Source: Macrostomum lignano
Taxonomy: Eukaryota
DNA length: 64,000 nucleotides
Direction of reading: 5' to 3'
NCBI GenBank assembly: GCA_002269645.1
Contig: NIVC01003437.1
Coordinates: 14,709 to 78,708, forward strand
The translations under genes and the position numbers were made by a program. Below the pieces are notes generated by a model. It searched no databases, had not been told where the DNA came from, and saw only the letters and a list, made by a program, of their open reading frames with translations. Shown here in pieces: positions 5,507 to 58,283 of this stretch; the first letter of the stretch is position 1; every line of letters starts with the position of its first letter.

Positions 5507-6718
5507 CTATTTTTTTCCGGTGCACCAGTCATCAAGAGCATCCAGCTGCTTCAAGTTCATCAGACCTTGGGCAATAGCGAAGCACTCGATGAAGCCTTTA
5601 AAGTTGCGAAGTGAATTACGACGTTCGTTGCCAAGACTGAGGCACCTGAAATTACCACGCCTGCCCTCATGTGTCGAGTTCAATACTTTAGCAGTTTTGT
5701 GCTCCAGGCTTCTGTTGAAGTAGTGCAGCAAATCGCGTTTTCTAAATGTGAAGCCAAGTCCGACAAATCGTCCGTTTGAAGTCGCCTTACAATGGGCAAA
5801 TCTTAAAAGTTGCATATTCCTGTGCTCCACATACCGATACACAATGCTGCCATCGTTCTTTAGTCTGGCTACCATCCCTTTTCTGAAGTTCCGACATCTT
5901 GAAAAGCGAAAAACTACACTAGAATTCTCGCTGAAAACAAGAAAGAATGAAATACGTTAGTTGTAAAAAGATTAAAAAGCGCTATTCGTAAATACTTACT
6001 CACTCTCCATTGAAGTCGAACTTGGCTCGCATGAACACGGTCACGTTGGGCTTGGGCACAAACAGGTCCTCGATTCCGTCGGCCGTGCTCACACCGATGA
6101 AGGAGCCAGACTCTCCCGTCACGAACGCGCCCGCAGACCGGTTGAGCACAGCCGACACGAGCACCGGAGTGTGCGGATTCCGGTGCACAGGCGCCAGGTT
6201 GAACGAGCCCACACGGAAGTGGTACAGAATCCGCAGCGAGCTCACCGCGATGCTGCTGGGCAGGTCGGTCGTGTGAGCTGCAATTCGATAACGATATAGC
6301 GATATGAGCACATCGATGCCTGCATGGACTCGCCAGTGAATGAACTGGGCACAACTGCAGTCACTCATGACTTCTCACCCTGCTGGAACTTTGCCAGCCT
6401 CCGCCTGTTCACAAACGAGTCGCACTGGCCGTGTCCGTGCAGCCATGCAGTGAGGAAGGCCTCGGCAGTCGCCAGCAGACACCAGCGATGCTCAGCGACC
6501 ATGCTGGCAGCTGCACAGCTCTCTGTCGTGTGGCAGCTCAGCACGCAGCCAGCAATGCTTCGGTCAGGCAGTTGATGAGGATCCAGCTTCCGTACTCCAT
6601 CAACGGGCAGGTCGTCAAGTGGACAGGCGTCCAGTCTGTCGTAGTCGGCGAGACCCACGATGGATGCCGAAGTGCAACTCGAGCCAACGATCAATATTGC
6701 CAAAGCAAGCATATTCAT
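5507..6718 (-). CDS. Secreted PAN/apple + LamG-like protein, copy 2; join(6379..6718,6004..6277,5507..5930), 345 aa
   Basis: Same exon structure and phases as copy 1 (exon 2 again 274 nt); spliced length 1038 nt is in frame; signal-like MNMLALAILIVGSSCTSAS. Confidence 0.8.
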
Positions 6719-6974
6719 ATTTTTGTCAATCTAAAGCTTCAGCAATCTAGAATTTCTATCGTGCTCATACTTACTGTATAAAGAGACACGTCGGAATGGA
6801 AGAATTACAAGTAATTATTACTCATTTTTGGAGCCAATAATTTGACAATTTGTCATCCTCGTTTGGCTTCCGATTGGTCTAGCTGCGCATGTGCTATCGT
6901 GCAACCAGCACTGCATTCACAGATCCGATGCATACAGATAAAGCTGGACGGATTGCCGCAAAGATTTCTCTTAG

Positions 6975-10236
<3,262 letters not shown>

Positions 10237-10499: not shown

Positions 10500-12038
10500 C
10501 TACTCAACCACAACGAACTTCTCCACCATTCCGTCTTCTCCAACGCAAGTTTCCACTTTGACATCCAAGTTGTCGACCTCCTGGGGCGTCAGGCCTCCGC
10601 TTCCGTCGGCGCTGCGCACGGAGATGAATTTCTTCTGTTGGCCATTGGGCAGATCGTGACCAGTGACCCTCACCGTGTAGGTCTTTTCGTCTTTGAGTTG
10701 CACACCAGTCGCCTCGGCTACAAATTCGCCTTCTTCAAGCGTAGCCGACTGGGCTTCCGTACCGAATTCTACAACTTTTTGATCCTTTGGTGGATTCTCC
10801 TCTTGCTTTGCAGGCTCAGGACTGAGCTTAAAGTACTTTAAATCCTCCGGGTCGGACGCAAAGATGCCTTCCTGCTTGTCATTGCTTGACGCTCCAGTGG
10901 CTTTAGCTTCAGGTTTTGGACCGAACTTGATGTACTTCAGGGCTTCTGGATCTGACGCAAAGATACCCTCCGGCTCGTCGTTGCTTGACGTTCCGGGCTT
11001 CGGGCCAAACTTGATGTACTTCAGAGCTTCAGGGTCGGATGCGAAGACGCCCTCTTGCTCGTCATTGCTCGACGCTCCACCGACTTTAGCTCCAGGCTTC
11101 GGACCGAACTTGATGTACTTTAAAGCTTCAGGGTCGGATGCGAAGACGCCCTCTTGTTCGTCGTTGTTCGAGGCACCGTCTTTCGGACCGAACTTGATTA
11201 ACTTTAGAGCTTCGGGGTCTGACGCGAAGATGCCTTCTTGCTCGCCAATGCTCAACACTCCACTAGCTTTTGCTCCAGGCTTCGGACCTAACTTGATGTA
11301 CTTCATGGCCTCCGGGTCCGACGCAAAGATGCCTTCCTGCTCGTCGTTGCTCGAGGCACCGTCTTTCGGACCGAACTTGATGTATTTTAGAGCTTCAGGG
11401 TCTGAGGCAAAGATGCCCTCCTGCTCGTCATTGCTCGACGCTCCACTGGCTTTCGCTCCAGGCTTCGGACCGAACTTGATGTACTTTAAAGCTTCAGGGT
11501 CGGATGCGAAGACGCCCTCTTGCTCGTCGTTGCTTGAAGCTCCTGTCCTTATTCCCATGTGAGCCTCGGGATTGGATTCCATGACTCCGAACTGTTGACT
11601 TGATCCACCTGAATCAGGCACGCGTCCATATCGAATGCTGTTTTGGGTATCAGAGTCGGAGGCGATCACACCTTCCTGTTTTTGACCATCCGCATCGAGA
11701 GTCGATCTTTTGCTACCTCTTAGGTGGACGATCCTCGACATGGTGGTAGATTCATTGTACTCTACCGGGGTTTCATGGACAGCAATGGTTGCATAGCTGA
11801 GTCCGTCGTGCTGCTCTTCCTTGGTGAATAGCACCTGCAGTGTCTTCTCAGGCAACTCATCGTAAGTGAGTTCAGCAGCCGGAGTGATGCAGACACTGTC
11901 GTATTTCATGCCAGACTTTGTTCCATGGTCTTTCACAACAACGTTGTAGGTGTCGCTGGTTGGAATACCTTCATCATCGAGGCCAAGTACCGTTTGCATG
12001 GACCGGACCTCGATTCCACCATCAACTGATTCAGCCAT
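10500..12038 (-). CDS. Intronless 512-aa acidic protein with eight SSNDEQEG(V/I)FASDPEALKYIKFGPK repeats; function unknown
   Basis: 1539-nt open frame with unique N- and C-terminal regions; repeat units differ mainly at third codon positions while the peptide is conserved; TATA-like TATTTAAG on the minus strand at ~12126-12133. No signal peptide seen. Confidence 0.8.
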   Translation of the reverse strand: MAESVDGGIEVRSMQTVLGLDDEGIPTSDTYNVVVKDHGTKSGMKYDSVCITPAAELTYDELPEKTLQVLFTKEEQHDGLSYATIAVHETPVEYNESTTMSRIVHLRGSKRSTLDADGQKQEGVIASDSDTQNSIRYGRVPDSGGSSQQFGVMESNPEAHMGIRTGASSNDEQEGVFASDPEALKYIKFGPKPGAKASGASSNDEQEGIFASDPEALKYIKFGPKDGASSNDEQEGIFASDPEAMKYIKLGPKPGAKASGVLSIGEQEGIFASDPEALKLIKFGPKDGASNNDEQEGVFASDPEALKYIKFGPKPGAKVGGASSNDEQEGVFASDPEALKYIKFGPKPGTSSNDEPEGIFASDPEALKYIKFGPKPEAKATGASSNDKQEGIFASDPEDLKYFKLSPEPAKQEENPPKDQKVVEFGTEAQSATLEEGEFVAEATGVQLKDEKTYTVRVTGHDLPNGQQKKFISVRSADGSGGLTPQEVDNLDVKVETCVGEDGMVEKFVVVE

Positions 12039-19543: not shown

Positions 19544-20394
19544 TCTGACGTAGAGAGAAATGGTTTTCGATGATATTTCACCTTCACTTATTGCCGGCCC
19601 AAGTTAAATTTTCAGAATATAATAATAATATTAATAATAATAGTAGCAATAGTAGTAGTAATGAAAATAAAAATATTAATGATGCGCTGTGGGCATCCTG
19701 GAACAACGCTTTCAGAGACATTCGTCCGAGGCAATTCTTTCCATTCCGCTGGCTCCTGAGCACATACAAGCGCACCAGTGCTGTACGCAGGCACAGCACT
19801 CTAATCGTCAGTCATGTACACTCTACCGCTGAGCTGCTCTGCCTTCGGTCCAACGCACTGGTATTCGACACCGGCACGCGGATATCCGCTGTGTTAATTA
19901 GCCTTTTCCATTAAAATTCTAAGTTGACAGTCCCTTCTGCATTGACGATATTTTGTAGGCTTAAAAGAGCCATTGTCTACCGTGAAAAACACCGTGGAAA
20001 AGCTGACATCTGGGAGTGGAAATAAAAAAATTAGGCCGTATGAATAAACTGAGCAAATGCTCAAACTCAGATTCATGAGAAAGTTCTCGGCTGCAGAGCA
20101 ATTGCTCCAGTCAGTAAGAATAAAAACATGGTCATAGACAAAAGAGCGGAGCATTTGCTCAAAAAACGTTGAGGCAGCTTTAAAGTCATGCCATTTGAGA
20201 GCATCATGTGCACATGCTTACACGCCTTCGGTTCTTGTAAGGATACGAGAGCATGGCTTCAGTGAGATAATACAGCCGATGACTCTAAGGCATCCCTACC
20301 CAAGGAGCGGTAGGAAGGTAGAAAGAGTCGGTCTGGCGCACGTCGCTGATTGGCATGTCGGAGACGGGTCAGGGGGTTAGGAAGTCCTTTTGGT

Positions 20395-21810
20395 GAGTGT
20401 CCATGACTTGGGGATGAGTACCCAAGACACTCAGAAGTAGATCTCCATGATTTTGGGGATGAGTACCCAATGACACTCAGAAATGGGTGTCCATGACTTG
20501 GGGATGAGTACCCAATGACACTCAGAAATGGGTGTCCATGACTTGAGGATGAGTACCCAATGACACTAATAAATTGGTGTCCATGACTTGGGGATGAGTA
20601 CCCAATGACACTCATAAATTGGTGTCCATGACTTGGGGATGAGTACCCAATGACACTCAGAAATGGGTGTCCATGACTTGGGGATGAGTACCCAATGACA
20701 CTCATAAATTGGTGTCCATGACTTGGGGATGAGTACCCAATGACACTCAGAAATGGGTGTCCATGACTTGGGGATGAGTACCCAATGACACTCAGAAATG
20801 GGTGTCCATGACTTGAGGATGAGTACCCAATGACACTAATAAATTGGTGTCCATGACTTGGGGATGAGTACCCAATGACACTCAGAAATGGGTGTCCATG
20901 ACTTGAGGATGAGTACCCAATGACACTAATAAATTGGTGTCCATGACTTGGGGATGAGTACCCAATGACACTCAGAAATGGGTGTCCATGACTTGAGGAT
21001 GAGTACCCAATGACACTCAGAAATGGGTGTCCGTGAATTGAGGATGAGTACCCAATGACACTAATAAATTGGTGTCCATGACTTGGGGATAAGTACCCAA
21101 TGACACTCAGAAATGGGTGTCCATGGCTTGGGGATGAGTACCCAATGACACTCAGAAATGGGTGTCCATGACTTGGGGATAAGTACCCAATGACACTCAG
21201 AAATGGGTGTCCATGAATTGAGGATGAGTACCCAATGACACTCAGAAATGGGTGTCCGTGACTTGAGGATGAGTACCCAATGACACTCAGAAATGGGTGT
21301 CCATGAATTGGGGATGAGTACCCAATGACACTCATAAATGGGTGTCCATGACTTGAGGATGAGTACCCAATGACACTCAGAAATGGGTGTCCGTGACTTG
21401 GGGATGAGTACCCAATGACACTAATAAATTGGTGTCCATGACTCTGGGATGAGTACCCAATGACACTCAGAAATGGGTGTCCATGACTTGGGGATGAGTA
21501 CCCAATGACACTCATAAATTGGTGTCCATGACTTGGGGATGAGTACCCAATGACACTCATAAATTGGTGTCCAAGACTTGAGGATGAGTACCCAATGACA
21601 CTCAGAAATGGGTGTCCGTGACTTGAGGATGAGTACCCAATGACACTCATAAATTGGTGTCCATGACTTGGGGATGAGTACCCAATGACACTCAGAAATG
21701 GGTGTCCATGTCTTGGGGATGAGTACCCAATGACACTAATAAATGGGTGTCCATGACTTGGGGATGAGTACCCGATGACACTGAGAAATGGGTGTTCATG
21801 ACTTGTGGAA
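20395..21810. repeat. 45-bp minisatellite, about 31 units
   Basis: Unit ccatgacttggggatgagtacccaatgacactcagaaatgggtgt with a few recurring variant sites. Confidence 0.95.
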
Positions 21811-22289
21811 GTGTGTCCATTCGACACACAAGAATGAGTGTCCAGAGCTAGTGTCCATAGTTGGAGAGGATCGCGTGTGGTGACGCGTGATTATTGCAGA
21901 TGGGGCTTCAGCCCTTTGCGATTCGATAGGTTGAGAAAACATGGCGAGTTTCTGGGGTAGGATCCGTTAATATTTTTGGAATTTTTAGTTAGAGCGGTAC
22001 TGTTGAGAAATTATTCTATTGGTCGAGAGGTCCTGGTAGTAGGGGGTCGAACCAGCATTTCTCTGTTGGGCTGTTCAGTCGATACCATCGCACATAGACC
22101 CTTAGACAGAGAAACTATTTAAAAGCAGTTCAAACCAATTTAGTTGCGTAAAATATCAAAGTAAAACACAAATAGGAATTTCTAAACTTCTAACTAATCA
22201 CTGCTTGATCCAGTCAAGTCTGAAAATCTGGAATAAATGATAATTTTTAAGCAAAAATTAACGAAAGCAAAGAAAAGAAAAGACAAATT

Positions 22290-40220: not shown

Positions 40221-41725
40221 AGGACTTCAGTTGAGGAGAATCAACGAATCAAAAGAGTCTCTGGTTATCACTTTATATAGGATTTTCTGTTTAACTTTAT
40301 AATACTGTCATAGTACTGCTCCAATACAGATTTCATCCACAGCAGCTGGCGGCGCACTAATGATGACTAGCTATGATAAGAAAATAAGAACGTTTTCCAC
40401 TTGAACTCATAACCTTGTGACTTGATTTCGATATGTCGATGGCTTGAGAGATCTAAGGGTAAAATTTCGATGGCAAAACCCATCCTCATGCTTTAACAGC
40501 CTGCAAATAAACATGCTGATATTTGAAGCACCTGTCAATCACTTTCAGTATGTGTAGCTTTTTAAAATAGTCTATGAAACGCAGCAGAATGACACTTGCT
40601 ATCAGAGCTGTAACCTGGGGTAAGCAGGTATCGGACGATGCTACGTCATAAATGGTTTAGCATCAATAAGTTGACTGGAGACTCGATGCGAATCGAAAAG
40701 CTGGATAAACCGAAATTCGGAGCACTTTATGTCATCCGACTGCTGAAATTCATATTGATAATTATAGGAAATATGGATTGTGACGCCTTTGATGGTTATT
40801 GTAGAGTTCACAGCGTTCACGGACGACCCGAGTGGCAACAGCCATGCCTACATTGAGACCAAATCGTTGTCAACTACAAATAACTTGAAATTCAATACTC
40901 AGAGATTCAGTTCACATCTCAAGCGATTTTTACTCCAATAAAAATGCAAAATCAAGTGGCAAGGTTATGAATGAGTTGAAGTGGAAAACATGGCAAACAC
41001 AGAACGCCTAGGGGGTTATGATAATTATACGCTCGTAGCTTTCCGAGAAACACATTTTTCATCTCCTTTAAAACATAAATAGTAAGATTTTTTGTGATAC
41101 TGCTGAATATTACCGAATGAAATCCCGAAGAACCGAAATTATGCTTTAAAATGTTGTTACATCTATCTTTAATTAACAATTTTTTTCAACTTTTGTTCAT
41201 AAAATAATGGAAACTTCATAGCAAAACTTCAAACAACTTAATTACTTTTAGCAGTTCTACTTAGTGTAATTTTCAGTAACCAGCAGGGTTTAAGACATTC
41301 CTAAATTAGTTAAAGCAGCCAGTTGCAAAAAAGAGGCTCACAACGATGAAAAGTTGGCAAAAGCAGAAGCTGGCAGATTTGCTCACAACGCGATTGGTCA
41401 GATGATGTAGTAGAGATCGTAGTCGAGCTTGTAGTTGAAGTTGTAGTAGAGACTGTTGTAGAGATCATGACGCCCATAAGAAAACACGAGCTGCTCATTC
41501 GCGTGCTGAGTCCGAAAGTCTGGAAATTGGCAGGTAATTTTGCAGCAATTTAATTTCCTCTGAAAGCTGTAACAGACTGATAAATCTCACTTTAATAAAA
41601 CCCACATTAAAAAAGGGCTCGTACTAGTAAACTTTGAATTGCTACCATTGCTTGCATCTTCTGCTTTGCTAGAGTTTTGACTTTATTGAATTCCTAAATT
41701 GGAAAACATTTAGCTTTTTTCTTAC

Positions 41726-44700
41726 CGCTGTATCTGCTGCTGAATCTGGTTCAAAGTGTTCGTCATCTGGGACAGTTGCTGCTCGATATTCAATTGTCGC
41801 ATTTCAATTGCTTCAGCTTTTCCATTCCATTGCGCCTCTATTCTATCGTTATCTAAACGCAAATCCAGGGCTTGGTTCTCCACGTGCGCCTTGAGCACAT
41901 CGGTGTCGCCCTTGTGCCTCTCCACAGGCCGCTGCAGCCGGGGCCGGTGCTCCCGCAGTCGTTTAGCCTGGGAAATCAGGAAGCGCTTGTAGCCTTCTGG
42001 GTAGCCGCTGAAGTCTTTTTTGTTTTTCCACCATGGCTGGAGAAGGACCAAATGCAAGAAGTCAGTGCTTATATATATATATATATATATACCAGTGTAT
42101 ACACATGAAAAAAACTGGCTTGACAATATTCTGCTAAGCTATGATCTTACCTCAGAACCGTCAGGACCCACTTTGCCACAGCGCCGCCCGCACCGACACC
42201 TCACCAGCAGTTTCCAGGCGTAGTGCAGGAATGACAGCGGCGGCGGAACTGGACTGACCTCCGCGAACTCCCGCAGCAGCTCGAACAGATTCTTGCGCCA
42301 CAGAACCTCCGCCCTGCTCGCCAACTCCGTCACGGTGCGGCTGAACAGCGCAATCAGCAGGTTCCACATCACAATATTCACCAGAAGGAGGTATACAAAC
42401 ACCAGAATTCCGTTGTAAGCCTTGTTTCCAGCTTCATCCGCACAGGACTCTCCAGTCGCGAGGTTGCTGGAGCTGCACGACTCGAACTGCGCGTTTTCGA
42501 AGATCCCAAAAGCCAGCGATACGGGTACGGTGAACACCTTTGTCAGAGCCTGAGCATCTTTTGAGTCTGAGAAGGCCGGAAATAGCAGGTTGAAGAAGAA
42601 GACGCCGAATGAGTACACCAGCACCAGCAAGATCAGTATGAATGGCAGAAGGTCTTGGAACAGAAGGCTCTTTAGCATGTTGATCTTCGGCCCGGTGACT
42701 TTGAAGTAGCTGAGCAGGGAAACAGAGCGGAATCCCAGTATCAGGAATGAGGCACTCAGCACAACCTGACTGCTGCGCAGGAGGCTGGAGTCGCTGAGCT
42801 CGCCGAGCAGCTTCAGGACCAGACCTGCCCACATCAGCAGTAACCCAGTCATGTCAAAGTAGTTGAACAGGTCTGTGAAGTAGCCAGGAACTCTTCGATG
42901 TCGGCCGAATATTGTCACTTCCTTTCGAGAAACATTGTTAAGAAAATCATTGATTTCCTGCAGAGTGAAGGACAGTGCGTACGACAGCAGAATGATGTCT
43001 GGAGCTGGAGACTGCTGGATCCGACTGAAGTCCGTCACGTACCAGGCAAAGTAGAGCAGGAAGAGCAGGAAAGCGACGACATGTATTATATATCTCTGCC
43101 AAACTGTTGTATTTGCAGGCCTCTTACCGGTGCAGCAGTGAGGAAAGCTGCTCCAGGGCAACGGTGGAGGCTTTTTCCAGTGCTGATCCACCAAATTGCT
43201 GATGCAGTCAGTGGCGAACAAGTCGTCACAGTCCAGAGTCTTCACAAGATGCATGACTGACACAAACTCTTTATCAACTTCATTTGAAGGCTTCTTCGCA
43301 GGTCGAGAAACGGATTCAATTGGTGGTAAAAACCTCGGCCCAGCATCAGCCTGTTTATCTGAGACACAAAACGAGCCAGTCAGGTAGTCGAACAGATTTT
43401 TCCGTTCATCTTCATCGCCATTGGCATATAGAGATGGTCCAGGATGTTGACAACAACATTTAACGCTCGAAGTTGCACCTTCTGCATAGTTTCACTTTTA
43501 CTTGACCTGACTTTTGGCTTGAGATAAATAAGCAACCTCAGGGTCTGAGAGATGATGTCGAATTGAGGCAGCAGCATGAGGTCGTTAAGAAGCTTTGGTT
43601 TCTCGAGCAGCACGGCGTATTCCATTAGCTCGAGGGCTTTTAAATTTTTGTCTTGCTCTGGGAAAAACTGCAGCAGAGTCGCTATAATGGGCGACTTTGA
43701 ACCTGGCTGCTGTTTTCGAATCTGAGATACAATATGCTTATGAAACTGGTCATCAATCTCATCGATAGCAAAGCCCAAACTGATCAAGCCTCGCAACATT
43801 TCCGCTGAGTCCAGCTCGAAGGCTCTGAGCAGCATCCGAACTTCTGGAGATTCTTCAGAATTTGGCATGATGCCATTTTCTCGTCCTTGCTTCCGCTCAT
43901 TTCTCTTGTCGCCATCTTCCTGAGATTTCCTCAGTGCAGGGCTTCTGTCATCTTCAATGCTAGCCTTGAGCGAGAAGTCATTAAACTGAGTCAAGTAATT
44001 CCGTGCGCTTTGCTTGTCAGGAAGTTTCAGCGCCCTCTTTGCAACATCCACTAACTTGAGCAGTTCTCTAATGGTAAATGACTTCTCTTTAGGAAGTTCC
44101 TTGATGTCATCTGCAAGCTCAACAAGAACTTCGAGCGTCTCCTTGTTGCAGGCAAAGTCGACGCACGTCTGCCCAGCTGCCGTCTCAGCCTCCAGTTTCG
44201 CACCATGCCTTAGAAGATATTTGATGTTTTCTTTGTTGCCACATTCGCAGGCAAAGTGCAAACATTTTGCTTCTTTAAATGGACCCGTAGTGACTCGAAC
44301 ATCTAAAAGTTCTTCAGAACTGAGACCACAAAGCCTGAATAACTCATCTGCAATCACCGGAAGCTCGTATTTTAGGCAAAAAACGTGAGTCACGTGCAGA
44401 CCTTCCGAGTTTTTTTGAAGATTCTTAAAAACCTTCGCTAGAGGAGACTTCGACAGAGCGTTCAAAACGTCTCTCAAGTTAGTTTCACTGGAAATTGAAG
44501 CAAAAAGACAATTATGCTTCTGCTTGTTTTCAGCTGCAGGATCAACACCGTTATCAACAAGACACTGTATGCGATTGATGAGTAGGGCCAGTCGATCTGA
44601 ATCACAAAACCGGTTCAGATTTCTGAACACTGCGTGTAACATACTATTGCCTTCGGAGTCTGTTTCACAAATATCAACCAAAGCGTGTCGATCCTCATTT

Positions 44701-46199
44701 TTGACTCGATCCCATAGCCATTGAAAAACGTCTGGCTGTGTGCAGTTAAGAGCAGAAAGATAAAACTGGGTTCGCTGCCGATGATTAGCAATGCTCAGAC
44801 AGTCTTTCCACCCAATTTTTTCGATAAGCGAATGCAGTGCCGTCAAATTTTGATGTGAAAATGCAAAGTGTATGGCAGTGTCACCATCGAAATCACGAAT
44901 AAGGAACTGCTGCTTGTCCTCGACAATGGATATGAGCCACTGAAACACTGCCGGATTCGCCGTGTTTGCAGCTGCTCTGAGCAAGACACTTTGATTTTTA
45001 GCAGTTTTATGATCCAGGCACTGCTGCAGACCGAGCTTCTCAGTCACTTGCTGTAGTGTGTCTAAATCCAGCTTTAAAAATGCAATGCTAACAGCACTCT
45101 CGCCGGAATCGTCTCGAGCAAAGAATTGCTGCTTGTCCTCGACAATGGGTATGAGCCACAGAAACACTTTCGGATTCGCCGTGTTCAAAGCTGCTCTGAG
45201 CAAGACACTTTGATTTTTAGCAGTTTTATGAGCCAGGCACTGCTGCAGACCGAACTTCTCAGTCATTTGTTGTAGTGTGTATAAATCCAGCTTGAAAAAT
45301 GCAATGCTAACAGCACTCTCGCCGGAATCTTCTCGAACAAAGAACTGCTGCTTGTCCTCGACAATGGATATGAGCCACTGAAACACTTTCGGATTCGCCG
45401 TGTTGAAAGCTGCTCTGAGCAAGACACTTTGATTTTTAGCAGTTTTATGAGCCAGGCACTGCTGCAGACCGAGCTTCTCAGTCACTTGTTGTAGTGTGTC
45501 TAAATCCAGCTTTAAAAATGCAATGCTAACAGCACTCTCGCCGGAATCTTCTCGAACAAAGAACTGCTGCTTGTCCTCGACAATGGATATGAGCCACAGA
45601 AACACTTTCGGATTCGCCGTGTTGAAAGCTGCTCTGAGTAAGACACTTTCATTTTTAGCAGTTTTATGAGCCAGGCACTGCTGCAGACCGAGCTTCTCAG
45701 TCACTTGTTGTAGTGTGTATAAATCCAGCTCAGAAAATGCAATGCTAATAGCACTGTAGCCGTCATTGTCTCGAGCAAAGAACTGCTGCTTGTCCTCGAC
45801 AATGGATATGAGCCATTGAAATACTTTCGGATTCGCCGTGTTAAAAGCTGCTCTGAGCAAGACACTTTCATTTTTAACAGTTCTTGCAGCCAAGCACTGC
45901 TGCAGATCGAGCTTCTCAGTCACTTGTTTTAGTGTGTCTAAATCCAGCTCAGAAAATGCAATGCTAACAGCACTGTAGCCGTCATTGTCTCGAGAAAAGA
46001 ACTGCTGCTTTTCCTGGACAATGGAAACGAGCCACCGAAACACTTTTGGATTCGCCGTGTTTAAAGCTGCTGCAACCAAGATGCTTTCATTTTTAGCAGT
46101 TCTTGCAGCCAGGCACCGCTGCAGACCAAACTTCTCAGTCACTTGTTTTACTTTGCTTAAATCACGCTTCAAAAATGCCTTGTAAACATTGTAATCCAT
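41726..46199 (-). CDS. Ankyrin-repeat + TRPM-type cation channel; exons ~46199..42151 (one frameshift near 43428) and 42036..41726, plus a probable short last exon near 41560; about 1450 aa if the frameshift is repaired
   Basis: Six 73-aa ankyrin-like units plus a canonical ANK pair (CLHFACECGNKENIKYLLRHGA); TRPM MHR4/pre-S1-like text (LMEYAVLLEK, NILDHLY, SVMHLV..DLFATDCISNLVDQHW); six TM segments with TGPKINML..QDLLPF, NLLIALFS, TRP box LWRKN..PVPPP; coiled-coil tail; intron GAG|GTAAGA..ctccag|CCA. An AG just upstream of the ATG allows additional 5' exons. Confidence 0.85.
44870..46090 (-). repeat. 219-bp coding tandem repeat (73 aa), six copies
   Basis: Period measured from gacactttc at 45642 and 45861; units are highly similar at the DNA level. 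Confidence 0.9.
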
Positions 46200-46416
46200 T
46201 GTAATCTGTGGATGTATGAATTGAAGAGTGAAAAGTTTTTTAAACTTTGTTGCTTGTGCTAAGTATTTAATAATGGTTGGAATTTCATTTTACTCTATCC
46301 TAATACTAAAACTCTAGTGCATATATAAATGGGCATTCAGTTTGCTGTTTAAGTATTTCTACGGAATATGTAAGTAATCTTCTCTCTCGTCCTAATACTA
46401 AAACCGACGCGATGTT

Positions 46417-46459
<43 letters not shown>

Positions 46460-47276
46460 ATGTTGCAAGTGAACTCCTACAATTCTGGCAAGTCGGCGTC
46501 GAAACTTATATAGGAAAACTGCAAATTTTCCCGATCAAGATTTAGGCTATTTTAATTTTTAATCTTCACATTTTAACATCCCTAAAAAACAGAAAACTGC
46601 TTTTTCAACCCCCAATAACCTTCTTTGGCCACTCTGCCTGGGGCTGCAGCCAGTTTGTAAAAATAGCCACCCCAACCTCCGCCCGCGGGTCGCTGTTTTT
46701 GGGGGGGGGGTGCGCGTGTTCTTGCGTTCAATGCAAATAAAACCCCCCGCGTGTTGAGGGTTGAGTTAAAGTTAACGATTCCCCCGAAACGGAGGGGGGT
46801 TGGGCTTGGACTGTGTGTACATAGCAGTTGTACAGTGTAAGCAGTAGATAGGACGGTGCCGAGATTTAATTGGTTTTATTATCGGTGCCTTTCAATACGC
46901 AGCCCTGTCTGTGTCTTGCTAGACAGTGAAATTCATTGAACAAACTTGCGAGCCTCTCAGGCAAGCAGTCGGGAAATTGGGAAATTACAAACGCTAACTT
47001 TTCCTCGAGTTTCCTCGAGTTTTAAACTTTGAGAGGAGAGACCTATATTGCTGGAAAGAGCTTGCAATGCTGAGTTCGGGGATAAAAGTTTTTGCTTTGA
47101 AAATGAAAACAAAAAGCACAGCATTCAAGAAAAAATCATTCTTTAAATTTTCTGACACGTGTTCTGCGTACAATTCAATTAAAACACTCTGTTGGCCAGG
47201 TGGCGCGATAGGGTTCAGTGTACACAGTGAATGCCCAGTAGAGGCTACAGATAGCAATGAAATGAAAGAACGATGA

Positions 47277-49082: not shown

Positions 49083-49610
49083 CCAAGACTGCAAGCATCC
49101 CCCAGATAGCAAGCATCCCCTAGATAGCAAGCATCCCCAAGATGGCAAGCATCCCCCAGATAGCAAGCATCCCCCAGATTGCAAGCATCCCCCAGATAGC
49201 AAGCATCCCCAAGATAGCAAGCATCCCTCAGATAGCAAGCATCCCCCAGATAGCAAGCATCCCCCAGATAGCAAGCATCCCCCAGATAGCAAGCATCCCC
49301 CAGATAGCAAGCATCCCCCAGATAGCAAGCATCCCCCAGAAAGCAAGCATCCCTCAGATAGCAAGCATCCCCCAGATAGCAAGCATCCCCCAGATAGCAA
49401 GCATCCCCCAGATAGCAAGCATCCCCCAGATAGCAAGCATCCCCCAGATAGCAAGCATCCCCCAGATAGCAAGCATCCCCCAGATAGCAAGCATCCCCCA
49501 GATAGCAAGCATCCCCCAGATAGCAAGCATCCCCCAGATAGCAAGCATCCCCCAGATAGCAAGCATCCCCAAGATAGATAGCATCCCCAAATAGCAAGCA
49601 TCCACCAGAC
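49083..49610. repeat. 18-bp minisatellite, about 29 units, inside the Helitron
   Basis: Unit cccccagatagcaagcat. Confidence 0.95.
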
Positions 49611-49739
49611 AATAAGTAGCTAGTGCGACAATTTCCTTAGCATTATAGCGGCTCCTTTAAAATTCGCTTACTTTTACGTTTGAAATTGTGTATCTTTTTA
49701 TGTTTAACAGGGTGGCTCTTTTATGTTCTACGCTCGTAC

Positions 49740-52020
49740 ATGGTAACTCTTTTATGTTTGATACGGTGGTTTTTCAATGTCTGACATAGTGGCTCTTCTA
49801 TGTTTGACATGGGGGCTCTTCTATGTTTGACATGGGGGCTCTTCTATGTTTGACATGGGGGCTCTTCTATGTTTGACATGGGGGCTCTTCTATGTTTGAC
49901 AAAGTGGCTTTTTAATGTTCAAAAAGGTGGCTCTTTTATGTTTGACATGGTGGCTCTTTAATGTTTGACATGGTGGCTCTTTAATGTTTGACATGGTGGC
50001 TCTTTAATGTTAGACAAAGTAGCTCTTTAATGTTTGACATGGTGGCTCTTTAATGTTAGACAAAGTAGCTCTTTAATGTTTGACATGATGGCTCTTTAAT
50101 GATAGACATGGTGGCTCTTTAATTTTTGACATGGTGGCTCTTTAATGTTGGACATGGTGGCTCTTTAATGTTAGACATGGTGGCTCTTTAATGTTCGACA
50201 TAAAGTCACTTATATGTTTGACATGATGGCTCTTTTATGTTTAACATGGTGGCTCTTTAATGTTTGACATGGTAGCTCTTTTATGTTCGACATGGTGGCT
50301 CTTTAATGTTCGACATGGTGGCTCTTTTATGTTCGACATGGTGTCGCTTCAATGTTTGACATGGAGTTACGTATATGTTTTACATGGTGGCTCTTTTATG
50401 TTCGACGTGGTGGCTCTTTAATGTTTGACATGGGGTCTCTTCAATGTTTGACATGGAGTTACGTATATGTTTGACATGGTGGCTCTTTAATGTTTTACAT
50501 GGTGGCACTTTCATGTTTGACCTGGTGGCTCTTAAATGTTTGACATGGTGGCTCTGTAATGTTTGACATGGTGTCTCTTTAACGTTTGACATAGAGTCAT
50601 GTATATGTTTGACATGGTGGCTCTTAAATGTTTGACATGGTGGCTCTTTAATATTTGACATGGTGGCCCTTTTATGTTCGACATGGTGGCTCTTTAATGT
50701 TTGACATGGAGTCATATATATGTTTGACCTGGTGGCTCTTGTATTTTTAACACGTTGGCTCTTTAATGTTCGACATGGTGGCTCTTAAATGTCTAACATG
50801 GAGTCACGTATATGTTTGACATGGAGTCATGTATATGTCTGGTATGGTAGCTCTTTAATGTTTTACATGGAGTCACCTATATGTTTCACATGGTGGCTAT
50901 TTTATGTTTGACATGGTGCTTCTTAAATGTTCGACATGGTGGCTCTTTAATGTTTTACATGGTGGCACTTTCATGTTTGACCTGGTGGCTCTTTAATGTT
51001 TGACATGGTGGCTCTTTAATATTTGATATGGTGGCCCTTTTATGTTCGACATGGTGGCTCTTTAATGTTTGACATGGAGTCATGTATATGTTTGACCTGG
51101 TGGCTCTTTAATGTTTGACATGGTGGCTCTTTAATGTTTTACATGGTGGCACTTTCATGTTTGACCTGGTGGCTCTTTAATGTTTGACATGGTGGCTCTT
51201 TAATATTTGACATGGTGGCCCTTTTATGTTCGACATGGTGGCTCTATAATGTTTGACATGGAGTCATGTATATGTTTGACCTGGTGGCACTTTCATGTTT
51301 GACCTGGTGGCTCTTTAATGTTTGACATGGTGGCTTTTTAATATTTGACATGGTGGCACTTTCATGTTTGACCTGGTGGGTCTTTAATGTTTGACATGGT
51401 ACCTCTTTTATGTTCGACATGGTGGCTCTTTAATGTTTTACATGGTGGCTCTTTAATGTTTGACATGGTGGCTCTTTAATGTTTGATAAGGTGGCTCTTT
51501 AATGTTTGACATTGTGGCTCTTTAATATTTGACAAGGTGGCTCTTTAATGTTTAAAATGGTGGCTCTTTAATTTTCGAAATGGTGGCTGTTTTATGTTTG
51601 ACATGGTGGCTCTTTAATGTTCGACATGGTGGCTCTTTAATGTTCTTAATGGTGTCTGTTTTATGTTTGACCTGGCGGCTCTTTAATGTTTGACATGGTA
51701 ACTCTTTTAGGTTTGAAATGGTGTCTCTTTAATGTTTGCCATTGTGGCTCTTTAATGTTTGACATGGTGGCTTTTTAATGTTCGACATGGTGGCTCTTTT
51801 AGGTTTGAAATGGTGGCTCTTTAATGTTTGACATTGTGGCTCTTTAATGTTCGACATGGTGGCTCTTTAATGTTTGACATGGTAACTCTTGTATGTTTGA
51901 TATGGTGGCTCTTTTACGTTCGACATGGTGGCTCTTTAATGTTTGACATTGTGGCTCTTTAATGTTTGAAATGGTGGCTCTTTAATGTTTCGACATGGTG
52001 GCTCTTTAATGTTGAGAATT
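49740..52020. repeat. 23-bp minisatellite, about 100 units, inside the Helitron
   Basis: Unit gacatggtggctctttaatgttt with recurring variant monomers (gacatggagtcatgtatatgttt, gacctggtggcactttcatgttt). Confidence 0.95.
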
Positions 52021-54719
52021 TTGTGTTTTTTAACGTGTTTTAATAAAAAAAACATTTTTCACCACTAAGATTCGAACCAAGGTCGCTACATTAGCATTCC
52101 AGTCTGTTTGCATCCGGCTATCTCTTTTCAATTGAAGAACATGACTTGTGGCCCTTATAATTCAATACTTATAGCAAGTCGGTTAGAGTAAAAGTTATGA
52201 CATAATCAATTTCTCAGTCAGCCAGTATCAGTCTCAATTCAAGTTAGCAATATGGTTACGCAATTTCAATGAAGTCTTGTGTGCGTTTCTGTGGCACTGT
52301 TTTCACCTTGTTGTGATGCAATCTTTATCACAATCGTAATTCAGCCAGTCAGTTTTTTCTCTAGCATTCTTACAATGCATTTCAAGTCAAAAATTTGGCT
52401 TGACCTTTGCAAAAAAGCATGTTTTTCGAATATTTAATCCCTTTAACATTGAGCAATTTCTTAGCCAAGATACATGTACCGTCCCAGGAACATTTCTGAT
52501 CGAATGGTGCAAGTTTGAAGAAAATCGGTTGAGCCATTTTTTCTGAAATCTATCGCATAGCTAGTTAGTTACAGACATTTCATTTTTAGTATATAGGATT
52601 TTAACATCCCTAAAAAAGCAGAAAACTGCTTTTTTAACCCTCAATAACCTTCTTTGGCAACTCTGACTGGGGCTGCAGCCAGTTTGTAAAAATAGCCACC
52701 CCAACCTCCGCCCGCGGGCCGCTGTGTATTGAGGGGTGGTGGGTGCGCGTGTTCTGGGTTCAATGCAAATAAAACCCCCCGCGTGTTGGGGGGTTGAGTT
52801 AAAGTTAATGCTTCCCCAGAACGGGGGTTGGGCTTGGGCTGAGTGTACATAGCAGTTGTACAGTGTAAATAGATAGACTGTGTCGAGATTCATTTGGTTT
52901 TATTATTAGCGCCTTTTTTCCATAGGCAGCCCTGTGTATTAGTTTGGCAGTGAAATTCAATGAATTGCGAGCTTCTCTATCTCAAGCAAGCAGTCGGGAA
53001 ATCGGTAAATTTCTAACGCTAACTGTTCCTCGAGTTTTAAACTTTGAGAGGAGACACTTATATTGCTGGAAAGATCTTGCAACGCTGAGTTCAGGGATAA
53101 AAGTTGTTTGCTTTATATATGAAAAGAAAAAGCACCGCATTTAAAAAAACTATTTCCATACTTTCAACTTTCTGCAAAAATTGTACTCAGTTTTGCGAGA
53201 TGTAATAGATAAAGTTAGGGGACGGGTTCAACTTCTCACTGCTGCTGTGTATTGGAGGGTTGATTTAGATTGCGCAATGTTTTTGTTAACCTTAACTGAG
53301 ACTGATACTGACTGACTGACTGTGAAATCGGTTGCGCAATGAATTGATTCAATTAGTTGAATATTTTTATCAGTGCCCTTTAACACGAAGCTGTGCGTAG
53401 TTCTAACCCTAACCCTAACCCTAACCAATGAATCCGGAGAGTTGAGTTGTTTGACGGAAAAAATTCGATTGAGTCTAGTTTAGCGGAGACGATCTTGCTT
53501 CTGCTTCGCGGAGAGGATCTTGATGGATTTGGCATCTTCAATCAGTCATAGAAGAAAGTAAAGAAAAGAATGAAAAGAGAAGAGAGATGAGATGATAGAA
53601 AACAGAGTAGAAATGAGTGGAGAGATTAGACATGACAGATGGGAGAGAAAAGGGGAGTAAGGCGGGAACGAAGGAGAGAAGAGGAGAGAGGAGATGAGAG
53701 GGGAGATATGAGATAGCAGAGAGAGACAAGAGAGATGATAGGAGAGAGAATAGATGAGGGATAAGAGCGTACAGAGGAAATAGAAGAGAGGGGAAGTAGA
53801 GGAGAAAGAAAGAATGAGATGAGGGATGAGAGATGAGAGGGGAGGGGAGAGAGGAGAGAGAAAAGAGGAGAAAAGAGGGGAGAAAGGAGACAGGAGAGAG
53901 TAGAGACGAAAGACCAGGGAGAAGATATAAATAAGGTAGTAGAGATGAGAGGAGAGAGAGGAGATCAAGAAGCGAGAGGAGAAGAGAGAGCCGAGATAGG
54001 AGAGAGATGAAGGATCAGAGATGAGAGAGTTAAGAGAGGAAAGTAGTGAGGAGAGGAGAGATGAGAGATGCGATGAGAAAAGAAATGAGAGGTGCGATGA
54101 GAAAAGAGATGAGTGAGAACAAAAGAGAGAAGAGATTAGAGATTAGAGAAGAGAGGGGAGAAGATGAAAGAAGAAAGGAGAGAAGAGAAGAGACAGAGGA
54201 TAGTGGAAAGGAGAAAAAAGATGGGAGATAAGAAAGTAGAGAGTGAGAGCGTATATAAGATATGAGAAATAAGAGCAGAGAGGAGAGAAAAGAGAAGAGA
54301 GAGAGAGGGTTAAGGAGAGACGATAGATAAGTGAGTAGATATGAGATATGAGAGAGGAGAGGAGAGAAGACAGGAGACAGAAGTGAAGAGGAGAGATATG
54401 AGAGAAGAGAGGAGACAAGAGACAGGAGAGGGTACAGACGAAAGATGAGGGAGAAGAGATAAATAAGGGAGTAGGGGTAGAGATGAGATGAGAGAGAGGA
54501 GAGAGAAGAGAGTCACGATAATAGCGAAGAGAGGAGAGAGGAGATATGAGAGACGTGAGAGTCTTTAAGCCATGGGCTTTGAAAGGTTTTGTAAAGAATT
54601 TGGAGACGATTTGGAAGATAGGGTTCAAGACATGGAATTTCAGTTGATGGATATTTCAGGGAATGGAATTCCGGTGATGGGAGTTCTTCCCCTTTCTCCC
54701 CCGAAGGAGGAGTTCCACT

Positions 54720-57290
54720 CGTATACATATAAAAATCAAAACTCTGTCTGTCTGTCTGTGGACAATTTTGTTCGCTATGGACTCCCAAACCGCTCAACCA
54801 AATTACACCAAACTTTACACCCACCCTAAGCTTACTACGGAGAATGTCTTAGGCTACCTTCAAATTTCCTAGACTCAAGTCTTCTTCCTGCCTAAAAGTA
54901 CAAAAAACTGCTCAAAATGCGCAATTTTTTCACTTAATCCTCCATAGCGCCGTTCCACTTCTACCGATTCTCTTCAAATTTGACACATACAATCTTCAAC
55001 TATTTTGACATAATCATGTAAAATTTCAAATTTTAAAGTTAATCCTGAAAGCCGGTGTGCAATTTTAAAGTTAGGCTGTTTTTTTTCAGCGAGGCAGCCA
55101 CCCCAACCTCCGCCCGCCTGCCTCTCTTTCCCGATCTGGGCCCAGATGTGTAAAAGGGTTTCAAAATTGACTAACTTTCAGCTGCCATAAGTTTGCTCCA
55201 CGTAAAGCGATTGACTTCAAATTTGACACAATTCTTTATTGACTTATTCTCTGTCCAAATATAAAGTCTGAACTCTGTATCTCAATCAGAACAGAAACTG
55301 TAAGCATGTGAAGTTTGTCTGCTTTTTCTGTTGTTTGTTCCACTCACTCACTAATTCCCCCAGAGCCAGACCAAGGGTCAGGCGATAGGGCTGAATGTAC
55401 ATGGCAATGTACAGTGTTTTGGAATAGCTTTGTTTATGGCCTTCTCTGCACCCCCGTGGAGAGGCTACGTTAGCCATGCATAACAGTTTAGTGAGAAATT
55501 CTAACCACTGTCCTCTGTATAGGCAAACTCTGCATCAGTTTAACAGTGGGTGGCAGTTGGCAAATCAAGGCAATCCAGCATGGTTTGTAAAAGCGAAAGA
55601 TTTATGAAAAGGCAATGCAATGCGATTCAACCCTACTAAATTAGTCACAGTCACACCATGGAAATTTTAAGTTTCTCTTAAAAGTACTTTGAAATTTAAA
55701 TGGCCTCCTAAGAAATGCGTATTTCCTTGGTTGTTAGACTGATGCAGACTGCAGTGGAGCTGAAGATACACAAATTCTTTTCAGGGCTTGCAAATTGGCA
55801 AGAAAGATGACATGATCAAAGCATGAGAACAGCCATGAGAGTACTACGTCCCACAAACTGGCTTTCCAAGCAGGAATGGGCAGACTTTTACCTCAAAGTC
55901 CAGAAAAGAATCCAGCTTATGGCTGAGGGGCAGTTGAGAGTGTGGAGAAGAAGGAATAGACGATTCGAAAAGAGAGGAGAGGTGAGAGAGGGAATAAGAG
56001 AAAAGATAAAAGATAATAGGAGAGATGAGGGAGTGAGGACGATGAGAGGAGAGAGTGGAGAGGAGCAAGTAGAGAGGAGAGAGTAGAGGAGCGAGTAGAG
56101 ATGAGAGAGATGAAAGAAAAGATATCGAGAGAGTAGAGATGACAGATGAAGGAAGAGAGAGCAGAGTGCAGAGAGACGAGAGAAGAGAATAGAGGGGAGA
56201 GAGTATAAAAGAGGGAAGAGAAGAGAGGAGTAAGGAAAGAGAGGAGTCAGAAGAGGGGAAAGAGAAGAGTACACAGTAGAGAGGAGAGTAGAGATGACAG
56301 AAGAGAGAGGGGAATGAGAGAGTGAAGATGAGAGTGAACAGACGATATAAGAGAGGAGAGAGGAGAGTGGGAGAGAAGAGAGAAGACAAGAGAGGGAGAG
56401 AGTATAGAAGTGAAGAGACGAGAAGAAAGAAGAAAGGATCAAGTCCTCCTGAGTCAAAAAAGAGGAAAGAGAGGAGTAAAAGAGGAGCGAGGTGAGAGAA
56501 CATATGAGAGTAAAGATGACAGATGAGAGAAGGGAGATGAGAGAGCAGAAACGAGAGTGAACAGACGAGAGATGGGGAGTAGAGAGAAAAAAAGAGAGCT
56601 ATAAGAAATAAGAGATGAGAGGTGGAGACAAGGGAGAGATGAGAAGTGAGTGAGGAGAGAGGAGGGGAGGGGAGAGAATCGAGAGGACAGGGGAAATTGG
56701 TGAAAAGGAAGAGATAGGAGAGGAAAGAGGGGAGAGATTAGAGAGAAGAGAGATGGGACAGAAGAGAGCAGAAAAATGAGAGGAGAGAGAAAGAGGGGGG
56801 AGAAGAGAGAGTGCAGAGAGAAATGACAAAAGATAAGAGAGAGAAGATAAAAGAAGAGAAAGGAGAGAGAAGAGAGGTAATGGAAGAGACGATAGAAGAG
56901 ATGAGAGGAGAGAGTGTACAGAGGAGAGGAGAGAGTTGAGAGAAGAGAGGAAAAATGAGAGAGGAGAGATGAGGGAAGTGTTGAGAAAGGGTAGAGTAAG
57001 GGGTGAGAAGAGGAGAGAGGGAAGAGAGAGTAGAGAGCAGAGAGAAATGAGAAGAGATAAAAGAGGAGATATGAGTGACCAGAGACCAGAGAGAAGAGAG
57101 AAGAGAGGAGAAGAGAAAGAAAAGAATAGAGGGGAGAGGGAAGAGACGAGAGAAGAGACTAGAGAGGAGAGAGGAGAAAAGAAAGAAGGAGAGAGGAGAG
57201 GAGAGAGAGAAGAGACGAGAGAGAAAATAGGAAACAGAAGAGAAGATAGAAGTTTCAAAGGATGCAAAGGACATAGGGAGAGGCAGAGGT
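54720..57290 (+). mobile_element. Diverged Helitron-like unit 3 followed by a third GA tract
   Basis: Head tcgtatacatataaaaatcaaaactctgtctgtctgtc..ctatggactcccaaaccgctcaacc; shares cagccaccccaacctccgcccgc and gcgatagggct..tgtaca..gaggctac with unit 1. Right boundary uncertain. Confidence 0.4.
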
Positions 57291-57353
57291 AGAAGCCAGA
57301 GTTTGCCTGACATTCTGCGCAGCACCCCAGCCAACAATATCAATGTTAGCCTC

Positions 57354-57530
57354 AAATCTTCCTGTGGGCAAACTTCCTGTGGGCAAACTTCCTGTGGGCA
57401 AACTTCCTGTGGGCAAACTTCCTGTGGGCAAACTTCCTGCTGGCAAACTTCCTGCTGGCAAACTTCCTGCTGGCAAACTTCCTGCTGGCAAACTTCCTGC
57501 TGGCAAACTTTCCGCGGGCTAATTTCCTGC
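57354..57530. repeat. 15-bp minisatellite, about 11 units
   Basis: ggcaaacttcctgtg switching to ggcaaacttcctgct halfway through the array. Confidence 0.95.
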
Positions 57531-58283
57531 TGGCTATAGACCTTGGGCAGTATTAATCAAAAGGCGTGCGCCCTCTTCCTCGCTCACAACGCATATATAA
57601 TTATTTGGCCAATACCCCAATCCACAAGGTACCGACCCCAACCACCATAACTTGATCGTCACAACAGCCGGCCAATCAGGGCACGCGCAGGGCAGAGGGT
57701 ACATGATGGCTAGAGGGGGCACTGAGTGATGCACATGACTTGTGGGGGTTGCGTGCTAGCGGCAAGCATTAATGGGGACGGGCTGTGAATAAGAATTGGA
57801 CACGCCCCATGCCAAGCAGACAGAATTAATTGGTGGGGTTGAGCAAAATCAGTGGGGAGGGGTTAGAGTGTTAGAGGGTTAGAGCCAGTGATTTCTTATC
57901 GGTTCAGGTGTAACCGGGCTAATCTCCAACAGAAAAATTTCGTTTTTAAATTTAGCTCTATAAAATGCATTCACTTGCACATTTTGCCACCTTTTCAAGC
58001 GGTATTTCTGCCGCACAATAAACTTGCATGTGTCTGCCCTCAACATTCCAACATAGAATTGAACAATTACATGTACATCAAAATTAACATTTGCAACAGA
58101 CATAAATTGCTGCGTTTGCAAACGAAACCGAAGCTCGAGCTAAAATATTATACCTTTTCGCTGCATTTGAATTTTTTTTTAGTCGGAGAAATTGATCACG
58201 GTCGTTCGTTCATCAAGGCATGTTGATTTAAAAAGTGAAAGGCTGATGTTTTACGGCAAAATACATCCAACACTTTATATTTG

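Follow-up and report, generated by a model that had tools for sequence, protein, structure and literature searches.

We describe a locus on a 64,000-nucleotide stretch of DNA from the free-living flatworm Macrostomum lignano (contig NIVC01003437.1 of assembly GCA_002269645.1, positions 14,709 to 78,708 of the forward strand), referred to as the window, whose own numbering is used throughout. With a probability of roughly 75%, it is one copy of a M. lignano 'TRPM-like' cation channel gene of the flatworm type that bears ankyrin repeats and lacks SLOG, the prototype of which is TRPM-MCLZ. The gene model comprises 1453 codons on the minus strand (46199-41722). The protein consists, in order, of an ankyrin-derived solenoid, a shortened MHR4-like linker, a TRPM-type six-helix channel with a TRP helix and a PPP motif, and a coiled coil; the gene is part of a large M. 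lignano expansion, and the protein and the TRPM-MCLZ-type clade have homologous linkers. An earlier reading of the letters by a model (the sequence-only reading) had proposed a TRPM-type channel with an ankyrin array in place of the N-terminal SLOG region. Most of its observation holds; the exceptions are the claim of a single exon and how well residues 1-430 qualify as ankyrin repeats.

TRPM-MCLZ of schistosomes (Smp_333650), an anthelmintic target, is a published TRPM without MHR1/2-SLOG and with N-terminal ankyrin repeats, and has been termed 'TRPM-like' (PMC10788528, PMC11731825, PMC12861061). It is encoded by three exons, and its activation by meclonazepam raises cytoplasmic Ca2+. For schistosomes, a single gene of this type is described in the TRPM-MCLZ papers (PMC11731825), and in the published flatworm TRP tree its 'TRPM-like' clade adjoins the TRPMs (PMC12861061). 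In our comparisons the channel is represented by P0209 (Schistosoma, 1380 aa), in which S4 H946, pore Y1038 and the overall length match those published for Sm.TRPM-MCLZ and its mutants (PMC10788528, PMC11731825); ankyrin repeats are present in P0209, SLOG is absent and MHR3/4 is matched. Here, we take the TRPM2-like domain PF25508 to be MHR3/4. The protein encoded in the window is divided as follows.

44904..46178, minus strand: tandem array of 5.8 copies of a 219-bp (73-aa) unit (Tandem Repeats Finder: period 219, 92% matches)
44100..44909, minus strand: older, non-tandem ankyrin repeats, aa ~431-700 (Pfam Ank_2, Ank_4, Ank, Ank_3 and Ank_5; DARPin and ankyrin matches in the PDB)
43267..44099, minus strand: juxtamembrane linker, aa 701-977, degenerate and MHR4-like, with a conserved 'LLPQFDII' motif; spans the frameshift described below
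42196..43266, minus strand: TRPM-type channel core, aa 978-1334 (alignment with 118 TRPM-like sequences; PDB profile search)

The channel core is of the TRPM type. The recognized motifs include the pre-S1 W, the E..D pair of S2, the N..D pair of S3, the pore FGI, NLLIALF in S6 and the TRP helix WRKNLFELLRE; the S4-S5 motif GPKINM, with its Gly kept, lies at 42693-42676, the TRP-helix W at 42300-42298 and the PPP motif at 42246-42238. The TRPM-like motifs on which the sequence-only reading was built were thus recovered. The group-I TRP fingerprint (as given in PMC9242649) is conserved in the family. A single-sequence search against the PDB returned TRPM1 (E = 7.5e-22), followed by TRPM3, TRPM4 and Nematostella TRPM2, and the alignments span the region from pre-S1 to the TRP helix and on into the C-terminal helices. 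With a four-sequence family profile, TRPM1 was matched at E = 1.4e-25; 73 distinct PDB sequences matched at E<=0.001, and the best 60 matches were all TRPM. Many TRPV, TRPC and TRPA chains are contained in the PDB. The TRPA1-like protein P0254 scored E = 1 against the transmembrane (TM) hidden Markov model (HMM) of the family, and the PPP motif after the TRP helix occurs in every TRPM-like group that was aligned, but not in the sole TRPA1-like sequence aligned. At the C-terminus, the rib and coiled-coil helices align to those of TRPM1 and TRPM3 (HMMER), without a match to Pfam TRPM_tetra. Both the alignment and the AlphaFold2 (AF2) model place there a predicted coiled-coil tetramerisation helix, as in canonical TRPM; in the AF2 model, which covers aa 431-1453, helix pairs of ankyrin type are seen together with six TM helices, a long helix formed by S6 and the TRP segment, and a terminal helix of 60 residues.

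E, D, N, D and E occupy the positions that form the Ca2+ site in TRPM4. In TRPM4, Autzen et al. are said to have described this site in 2018 as E828/Q831/N865/D868/E1068. A Ca2+ site of the TRPM2/4/5/8 type (S2 E and D-for-Q; S3 N and D; TRP-helix E) would thus be essentially kept, and intracellular Ca2+ is therefore a likely co-activator of the channel. The selectivity filter is less conserved: it reads FGI, where canonical TRPMs have FGQ or YGE, and the distant family members P0006 and P0007 are without the filter Gly; the conduction properties are uncertain for these reasons.

The N-terminal half is ankyrin-derived in two different ways. Residues 1-430 are 5.8 copies of the 219-bp unit at 92% DNA identity, and each 73-aa unit, judged from its homology, appears to be a degenerate pair of ankyrin repeats. 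By themselves, the tandem units peak at Ank_4 with E = 3e-4, short of the Pfam cut-off, and the His of the TPLH motif is gone from them; they are nevertheless 43% identical (E = 4e-55) to the repeats of the paralogue P0003, which Pfam calls Ank_2 at 1.4e-18. The dN/dS values among the tandem units are ~0.6-1.1. Further towards the membrane, Pfam on the full model gives Ank_2 at E = 1.4e-17, with its strongest stretch at aa 639-698 (44285-44106), where a canonical ankyrin pair is found; a helix-pair pattern extends over the older repeats in the AF2 model. The solenoid is made up of six recently amplified 73-aa double-ankyrin units and roughly eight older repeats. Of the '~700 residues of ankyrin' that had been claimed, aa ~431-700 are recognized by Pfam, whereas aa 1-430 are degenerate tandem units below its cut-off. 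Pfam matches of the tandem units to BTB_SANBR, DUF6352 and Focadhesin were taken as repeat-inflated artefacts and rejected.

No LSDAT/SLOG, TRPM2-like (PF25508), TRPM_tetra or Nudix domain was matched by Pfam on the gene model, in which Ion_trans was matched; the proposed replacement of the SLOG region by ankyrin repeats is thus upheld. Neither did the surrounding DNA supply an upstream SLOG exon. When 45 SLOG segments from TRPM relatives, including those of M. lignano itself, were compared with the 64-kb window by tblastn, the best match (E = 0.01) was distant and on the opposite strand, and a SLOG HMM gave E>=2.2 against the six-frame translation of the window, where the TM control reached 1e-24. 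A jackhmmer search from the TRPM6 N-terminus found no SLOG among family members; P0006 and P0007 were reached by this iterated search at ~1e-6, which bears on MHR3/4.

The linker connects the family to TRPM-MCLZ. In hhalign comparisons of the juxtamembrane region, the window family (family A) matched the TRPM-MCLZ-type clade at E = 8.5e-11 over 278 collinear columns starting from the last ankyrin pair, with a shared RQFD.IP motif inside the match. The M. lignano branch of that clade was matched at E = 2.4e-8 over 268 columns, and the TRPM-MCLZ orthologues at E = 4.7e-5. Against the MHR3/4 of every canonical TRPM group, the linker gave only E>=0.009. The TRPM-MCLZ-type clade itself matches canonical MHR3/4 at E = 3e-22, with the flatworm canonical clade as its best partner. 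An MHR4-like segment had been named in the sequence-only reading; this holds through the matches to the TRPM-MCLZ-type clade, while the direct match to canonical TRPM does not carry it, and the linker can be called MHR4-like only indirectly, with that clade as the intermediate. The TM-based results conflict: the family TM HMM gives the TRPM-MCLZ clade 103.5 bits and the other groups 82.6 bits (p = 3e-10), whereas the sequence-to-HMM and profile-profile scores given below do not favour that clade. As a sister relation between the two was not recovered from the TM domain, the window family is a paralogous subfamily of TRPM-MCLZ and not its orthologue. The proposal of a unique lineage-specific chimera is not sustained, since the architecture had already been published for TRPM-MCLZ and the last ankyrin pair and linker are collinearly homologous to that clade.

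A neighbour-joining (NJ) tree of the TM domain (118 sequences, 321 columns, 200 bootstraps) was rooted on a TRPA1-like protein as the sole outgroup and contained no labelled TRPS sequence. Clade A (93% support) unites the window family with P0039 and the P0040 cluster, and clade B (70%) unites the M. lignano second tier with the TRPM-MCLZ orthologues. Several results weigh against the assignment made here. Clades A and B are separate in the tree, with links to canonical TRPMs at 10-26% support; the TM profile-profile scores of the family are near-equal for all groups (210-263), and the family sequences score better on a broad canonical TM HMM than on the clade-B HMM. No intron position is common to the family and the Echinococcus TRPM-MCLZ orthologue, in which the two introns follow aa 189 and aa 604 and the region past the TRP helix is uninterrupted. 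The AF2 model is weak (mean pLDDT 58.7, pTM 0.44), the filter is the unusual FGI with the Gly lost in distant members, the reading frame of the window copy is broken, and the closest paralogue locus contains an in-frame TAG.

The gene structure was read from the DNA as follows.

46206..46207, minus strand: candidate AG acceptor, 6 nt 5' of the ATG, in ...catccacAG followed by ATTACAATGG
43428..46199, minus strand: coding segment 1, aa 1-924; ATG, ankyrin-derived array and most of the juxtamembrane linker (939-aa open reading frame, frame analysis)
43426..43427, minus strand: two surplus bases AT in CTCTAT(AT)GCC, frame-shifting (frames; comparison with P0001 and L001)
42151..43425, minus strand: coding segment 2, aa 925-1349; end of the linker, pre-S1, S1-S6, pore, TRP helix, PPP motif and Cys-rich segment
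42037..42150, minus strand: GT-AG intron, 114 bp, phase 0 (GAG/GTAAGA ... CTCCAG/CCATGG; same junction in L001)
41722..42036, minus strand: coding segment 3, aa 1350-1453 and TAA; rib helix and C-terminal coiled coil
41682..41687, minus strand: AATAAA polyadenylation signal, 35 nt past the stop codon, read from the sequence

Three open reading frames (ORFs) follow one another on the minus strand, of 939 aa (46199-43380), 374 aa (43263-42139) and 134 aa (42126-41722). Reading of all frames showed that the first two fuse when AT (43427-43426) is skipped, in which case ...NILDHLY runs on as ANGDEDERKNLFDYL; the second and third are connected across the 114-bp GT-AG intron (42150-42037), and the TAA stop stands at 41724-41722. 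Coding segment 2 is based on the ORF, on Pfam Ion_trans and on the TRPM1/3/4/2 alignments. The view that about 4 kb of coding sequence lies in one exon therefore fails on both the broken frame and the intron. The UniRef protein P0001 begins with 'ITMDYN' at the first base past the AG at 46206..46207; this AG may be a splice acceptor, possibly for trans-splicing, from which the coding exon starts. About 13 copies of GACA form a microsatellite at 46413-46463, ~215 bp 5' of the start codon.

The two surplus bases are either a real disabling lesion of the window copy or an assembly indel at one dinucleotide; freed of them, the sequence there, within 43400-43450, would read CTCTATGCC. As the frame is disrupted by 2 nt, this copy may be non-functional. 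A pseudogene, in which a real 2-nt insertion leaves at most a 939-aa fragment of ankyrin repeats and linker and no channel, is a serious possibility, though not the more likely one. Apart from the interrupted frame itself, it is favoured by the nearest paralogue locus (L001), where an in-frame TAG stands for a conserved S2 Ser, so that disabled copies do occur in the family; by the dN/dS of ~0.6-1.1 among the tandem units; and by an exact-product look-up of the 939-aa ORF that gave no gene on record. However, the 529 codons beyond the shift stay open save for the spliced intron and are 71-83% identical to the paralogues, with every channel motif intact. P0001 crosses the site as ..DHLYANGDEDE.. 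with identical flanking residues, and the paralogue L001 is without the surplus bases at this position. The surplus AT is embedded in TATAT, the kind of sequence in which indel errors of long reads typically arise, and the splice sites and the AATAAA signal are unharmed.

The window gene is one of many. A search with its C-terminal 740 aa matched solely M. lignano proteins, with identities of 94% for P0001, 63-83% for P0002-P0005 and 33-34% for P0006 and P0007. When profile A1 was searched against 1.84 billion representatives, with the family defined as matches of at least 190 bits, ~35 representatives (clusters at 50% identity) were found that cover the linker, TM domain and C-terminus, and the next matches scored at most 144 bits. 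Every named family member is from M. lignano. Ankyrin repeats were found in 22 of the 33 family members scanned and SLOG in none of the 33. The next tier of the profile search is likewise ankyrin-bearing; it includes M. lignano proteins with ankyrin repeats, PF25508 and Ion_trans, as well as proteins of Schistocephalus, Dicrocoelium and other cestodes and trematodes. A homologue search seeded with P0072 returned P0072 alone.

At the paralogue locus L001 (GCA_002269645.1 NIVC01001982.1, BOX15_Mlig010093g1), the region from the ankyrin repeats through S6 and the TRP helix lies in one frame (5728-8964), interrupted by the in-frame TAG at 8122-8124 (YAL*FTLQE), where the deposited model of 707 aa ends; L001 is possibly a second disabled copy in the subfamily. 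L003 (GCA_036350755.1) is an intact 1537-aa family member without introns. A disabling lesion is thus present at two of the three loci read at the DNA level, the window and L001, and the intact L003 is a more distant member. As the ankyrin and TM parts share a single frame in L001 and an intact ORF in L003, we read them as one gene. In the window itself, the ankyrin array and the linker share one ORF. STIM1-like EF-hand and SOAR domains were matched in one family gene model, and WSC and PAN in another; these are presumably P0016 and P0026, and the UniRef name of P0016 is 'EF-hand domain-containing protein'. These models may be fusions of neighbouring genes, not real architectures.

The window protein shares several features with TRPM-MCLZ and its orthologues in trematodes and cestodes. 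Both have N-terminal ankyrin repeats in place of MHR1/2-SLOG, TRPM-type S1-S6, a TRP helix and PPP, both are without a Nudix or kinase domain, have few exons and are restricted to flatworms, and the last ankyrin pair and juxtamembrane linker are collinearly homologous. Nevertheless, there are clear differences between them. The identity is only ~19-20%, and the TM domains fall into separate clades of the tree; the MHR3 part is largely gone from the window protein and its MHR4 is far more degenerate, whereas its ankyrin array is far longer and consists in part of very recent tandem units. His946 in S4, required for meclonazepam action in TRPM-MCLZ (PMC10788528, PMC12861061), is Ser in the window protein (FRSVSLL vs MRTLHIT). 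The intron positions differ, and M. lignano has dozens of paralogues. Closer to home, M. lignano proteins such as P0042, P0046, P0047 and P0049 have the same order of ankyrin repeats, linker and TM domain, lack SLOG and give the best linker match (E = 2.4e-8), but they keep a Pfam-detectable MHR3/4 and group with the TRPM-MCLZ orthologues at 70-82% support.

Compared with canonical TRPM1-8, the channel core, the Ca2+-site residues, the TRP helix, the PPP motif and the C-terminal coiled coil are alike, and the best matches among solved structures are TRPM1, TRPM3, TRPM4 and TRPM2. The window protein differs in having an N-terminal ankyrin solenoid instead of MHR1/2-SLOG, and no MHR3/4 is detected in it by direct comparison. 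A long N-terminal ankyrin solenoid before a 6-TM TRP channel is shared with TRPA1 and TRPN (NompC), which suggests, by analogy, that the solenoid may serve as a tether, spring or interaction platform; the TM similarity to these channels is not significant, and the likeness is one of analogy, not membership. Two flatworm proteins, P0081 (M. lignano) and P0082 (Clonorchis sinensis), contain LSDAT_euk, PF25508 and Ion_trans with a Pfam-significant Ank_2 N-terminal to SLOG. In both the TM and the MHR profile comparisons, the TRPM-MCLZ-type clade matches their clade, the flatworm canonical one, best, and their architecture could be an intermediate toward the SLOG-less TRPM-MCLZ type.

Other origins of this channel have to be weighed against a TRPM-MCLZ-type ancestry. 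A fusion of the ankyrin array to a TRPM core, unrelated to TRPM-MCLZ, might have taken place in the Macrostomum lineage itself through domain shuffling or retroposition. That the family forms its own clade without a supported TM link to the TRPM-MCLZ clade, that its intron positions differ from those of the TRPM-MCLZ orthologue and that its named members are solely from M. lignano would all agree with such an independent chimera. We nevertheless consider it unlikely, given the collinear profile match from the last ankyrin pair through the linker, which links the family to the TRPM-MCLZ-type clade but not to any canonical TRPM group. In addition, M. lignano holds intermediate proteins of that clade (ankyrin repeats, PF25508 and Ion_trans), and both clades are restricted to flatworms among members with a named source organism. 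Retroposition, which the sequence-only reading had also raised, found no evidence in its support: the family is intron-poor, yet its conserved intron matches neither intron of the Echinococcus TRPM-MCLZ orthologue. It is improbable, too, that the core came from TRPS (soromelastatin) or a sister lineage of TRPM plus TRPS instead of TRPM proper. The TRPA1-rooted tree does put the family near its base, at 26% support, but the chain of linker matches goes via the TRPM-MCLZ-type clade, whose best partner is the canonical flatworm TRPM clade with LSDAT_euk and PF25508, and TRPM-MCLZ is set beside the TRPMs in the published flatworm tree (PMC12861061). The Nudix domain is absent, and indeed both TRPS hallmarks, SLOG and Nudix, are missing from the gene model and the scanned family members.

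A TM domain taken from a classical ankyrin-bearing family (TRPA, TRPN, TRPC or TRPV) would agree with the ankyrin repeats, but it is scarcely credible and was ruled out at the level of sequence comparison: among the 73 distinct PDB sequences matched, the best 60 matches are TRPM, P0254 is at E = 1, and the PPP motif and the rib and coiled-coil helices are those of TRPM. Large TRPM/TRPS surveys describe an ankyrin-free ancestor (Himmel et al., 2020) and a universal melastatin region. Set against them, it is conceivable, though very improbable, that the ankyrin-bearing, SLOG-less flatworm channels, both the present family and the TRPM-MCLZ clade, are not TRPMs that lost SLOG but have survived from an early lineage with ankyrin repeats at the root of TRPM and TRPS. 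What leaves room for this idea is the basal, unsupported tree position under a TRPA1 root and the presence of both ankyrin repeats and SLOG in P0081 and P0082. If it were true, Himmel et al. (2020) would be mistaken about an ankyrin-free ancestor of TRPM and TRPS, and SLOG would be an insertion into a channel that already had ankyrin repeats.

On the preferred TRPM-MCLZ-type assignment, the coiled coil would drive tetramer assembly, and the cation channel would be gated via the S1-S4 pocket and the TRP helix, with the ankyrin solenoid possibly replacing the nucleotide-binding SLOG as a cytosolic sensing or anchoring module. As for its history, a flatworm TRPM may first have acquired N-terminal ankyrin repeats and later shed SLOG to give the TRPM-MCLZ type; one branch of this type in Macrostomum would then have diverged fast, shortened its MHR3/4 and expanded. 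The subfamily would thus derive from a TRPM-MCLZ-like ancestor, and, like expanded sensory receptor families, it may evolve through the birth and death of genes and the amplification of tandem repeats.

The window is eukaryotic DNA with many minisatellites. Directly upstream of the gene, in the 49091-52013 region, are minisatellite arrays of 18 bp x 29 copies and 23 bp x 99 copies, and a long, strong positive GC skew extends over 50000-58000. Two adjoining ORFs on the plus strand (7298-10143) match RVT_1 (2.3e-28) and RNase H (3e-13) and form a retrotransposon pol region. A 512-aa ORF on the minus strand (10500-12038) consists mostly of 183-bp (61-aa) tandem repeats (10819-11534) and has a weak match to the ATP:guanido phosphotransferase N-terminal domain. 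Another minus-strand ORF, of 522 aa (20259-21827), contains a 45-bp unit in 31 copies that are 92% identical, of which it consists, and is either a repetitive protein or an open non-coding minisatellite. Finally, the end of a minus-strand ORF at 26744-27457 matches the start of Fibrinogen_C (1.8e-10), and this ORF probably represents a single exon of a gene related to fibrinogen.

A TRPM-type channel with ankyrin repeats instead of SLOG is an architecture already known from TRPM-MCLZ, and the present gene overturns nothing in this respect. In comparison with the literature searched, the Macrostomum expansion, the recent tandem amplification of ankyrin units and the disabled copies appear undescribed. 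The surveys that claim a universal melastatin region and no ankyrin repeats for TRPM and TRPS (Morini, 2026; Himmel et al., 2020) were apparently made without flatworm sampling: the species list of the former has no flatworm, and in the latter acoels are the only such mention, with no sign of sampled Platyhelminthes. A free-living flatworm is now seen to have dozens of such genes, ~35 clusters at 50% identity and about ten more that are closer to TRPM-MCLZ, in a pattern reminiscent of sensory receptor repertoires that have expanded. The transgenic model M. lignano thereby offers many natural variants of a drug-target architecture.

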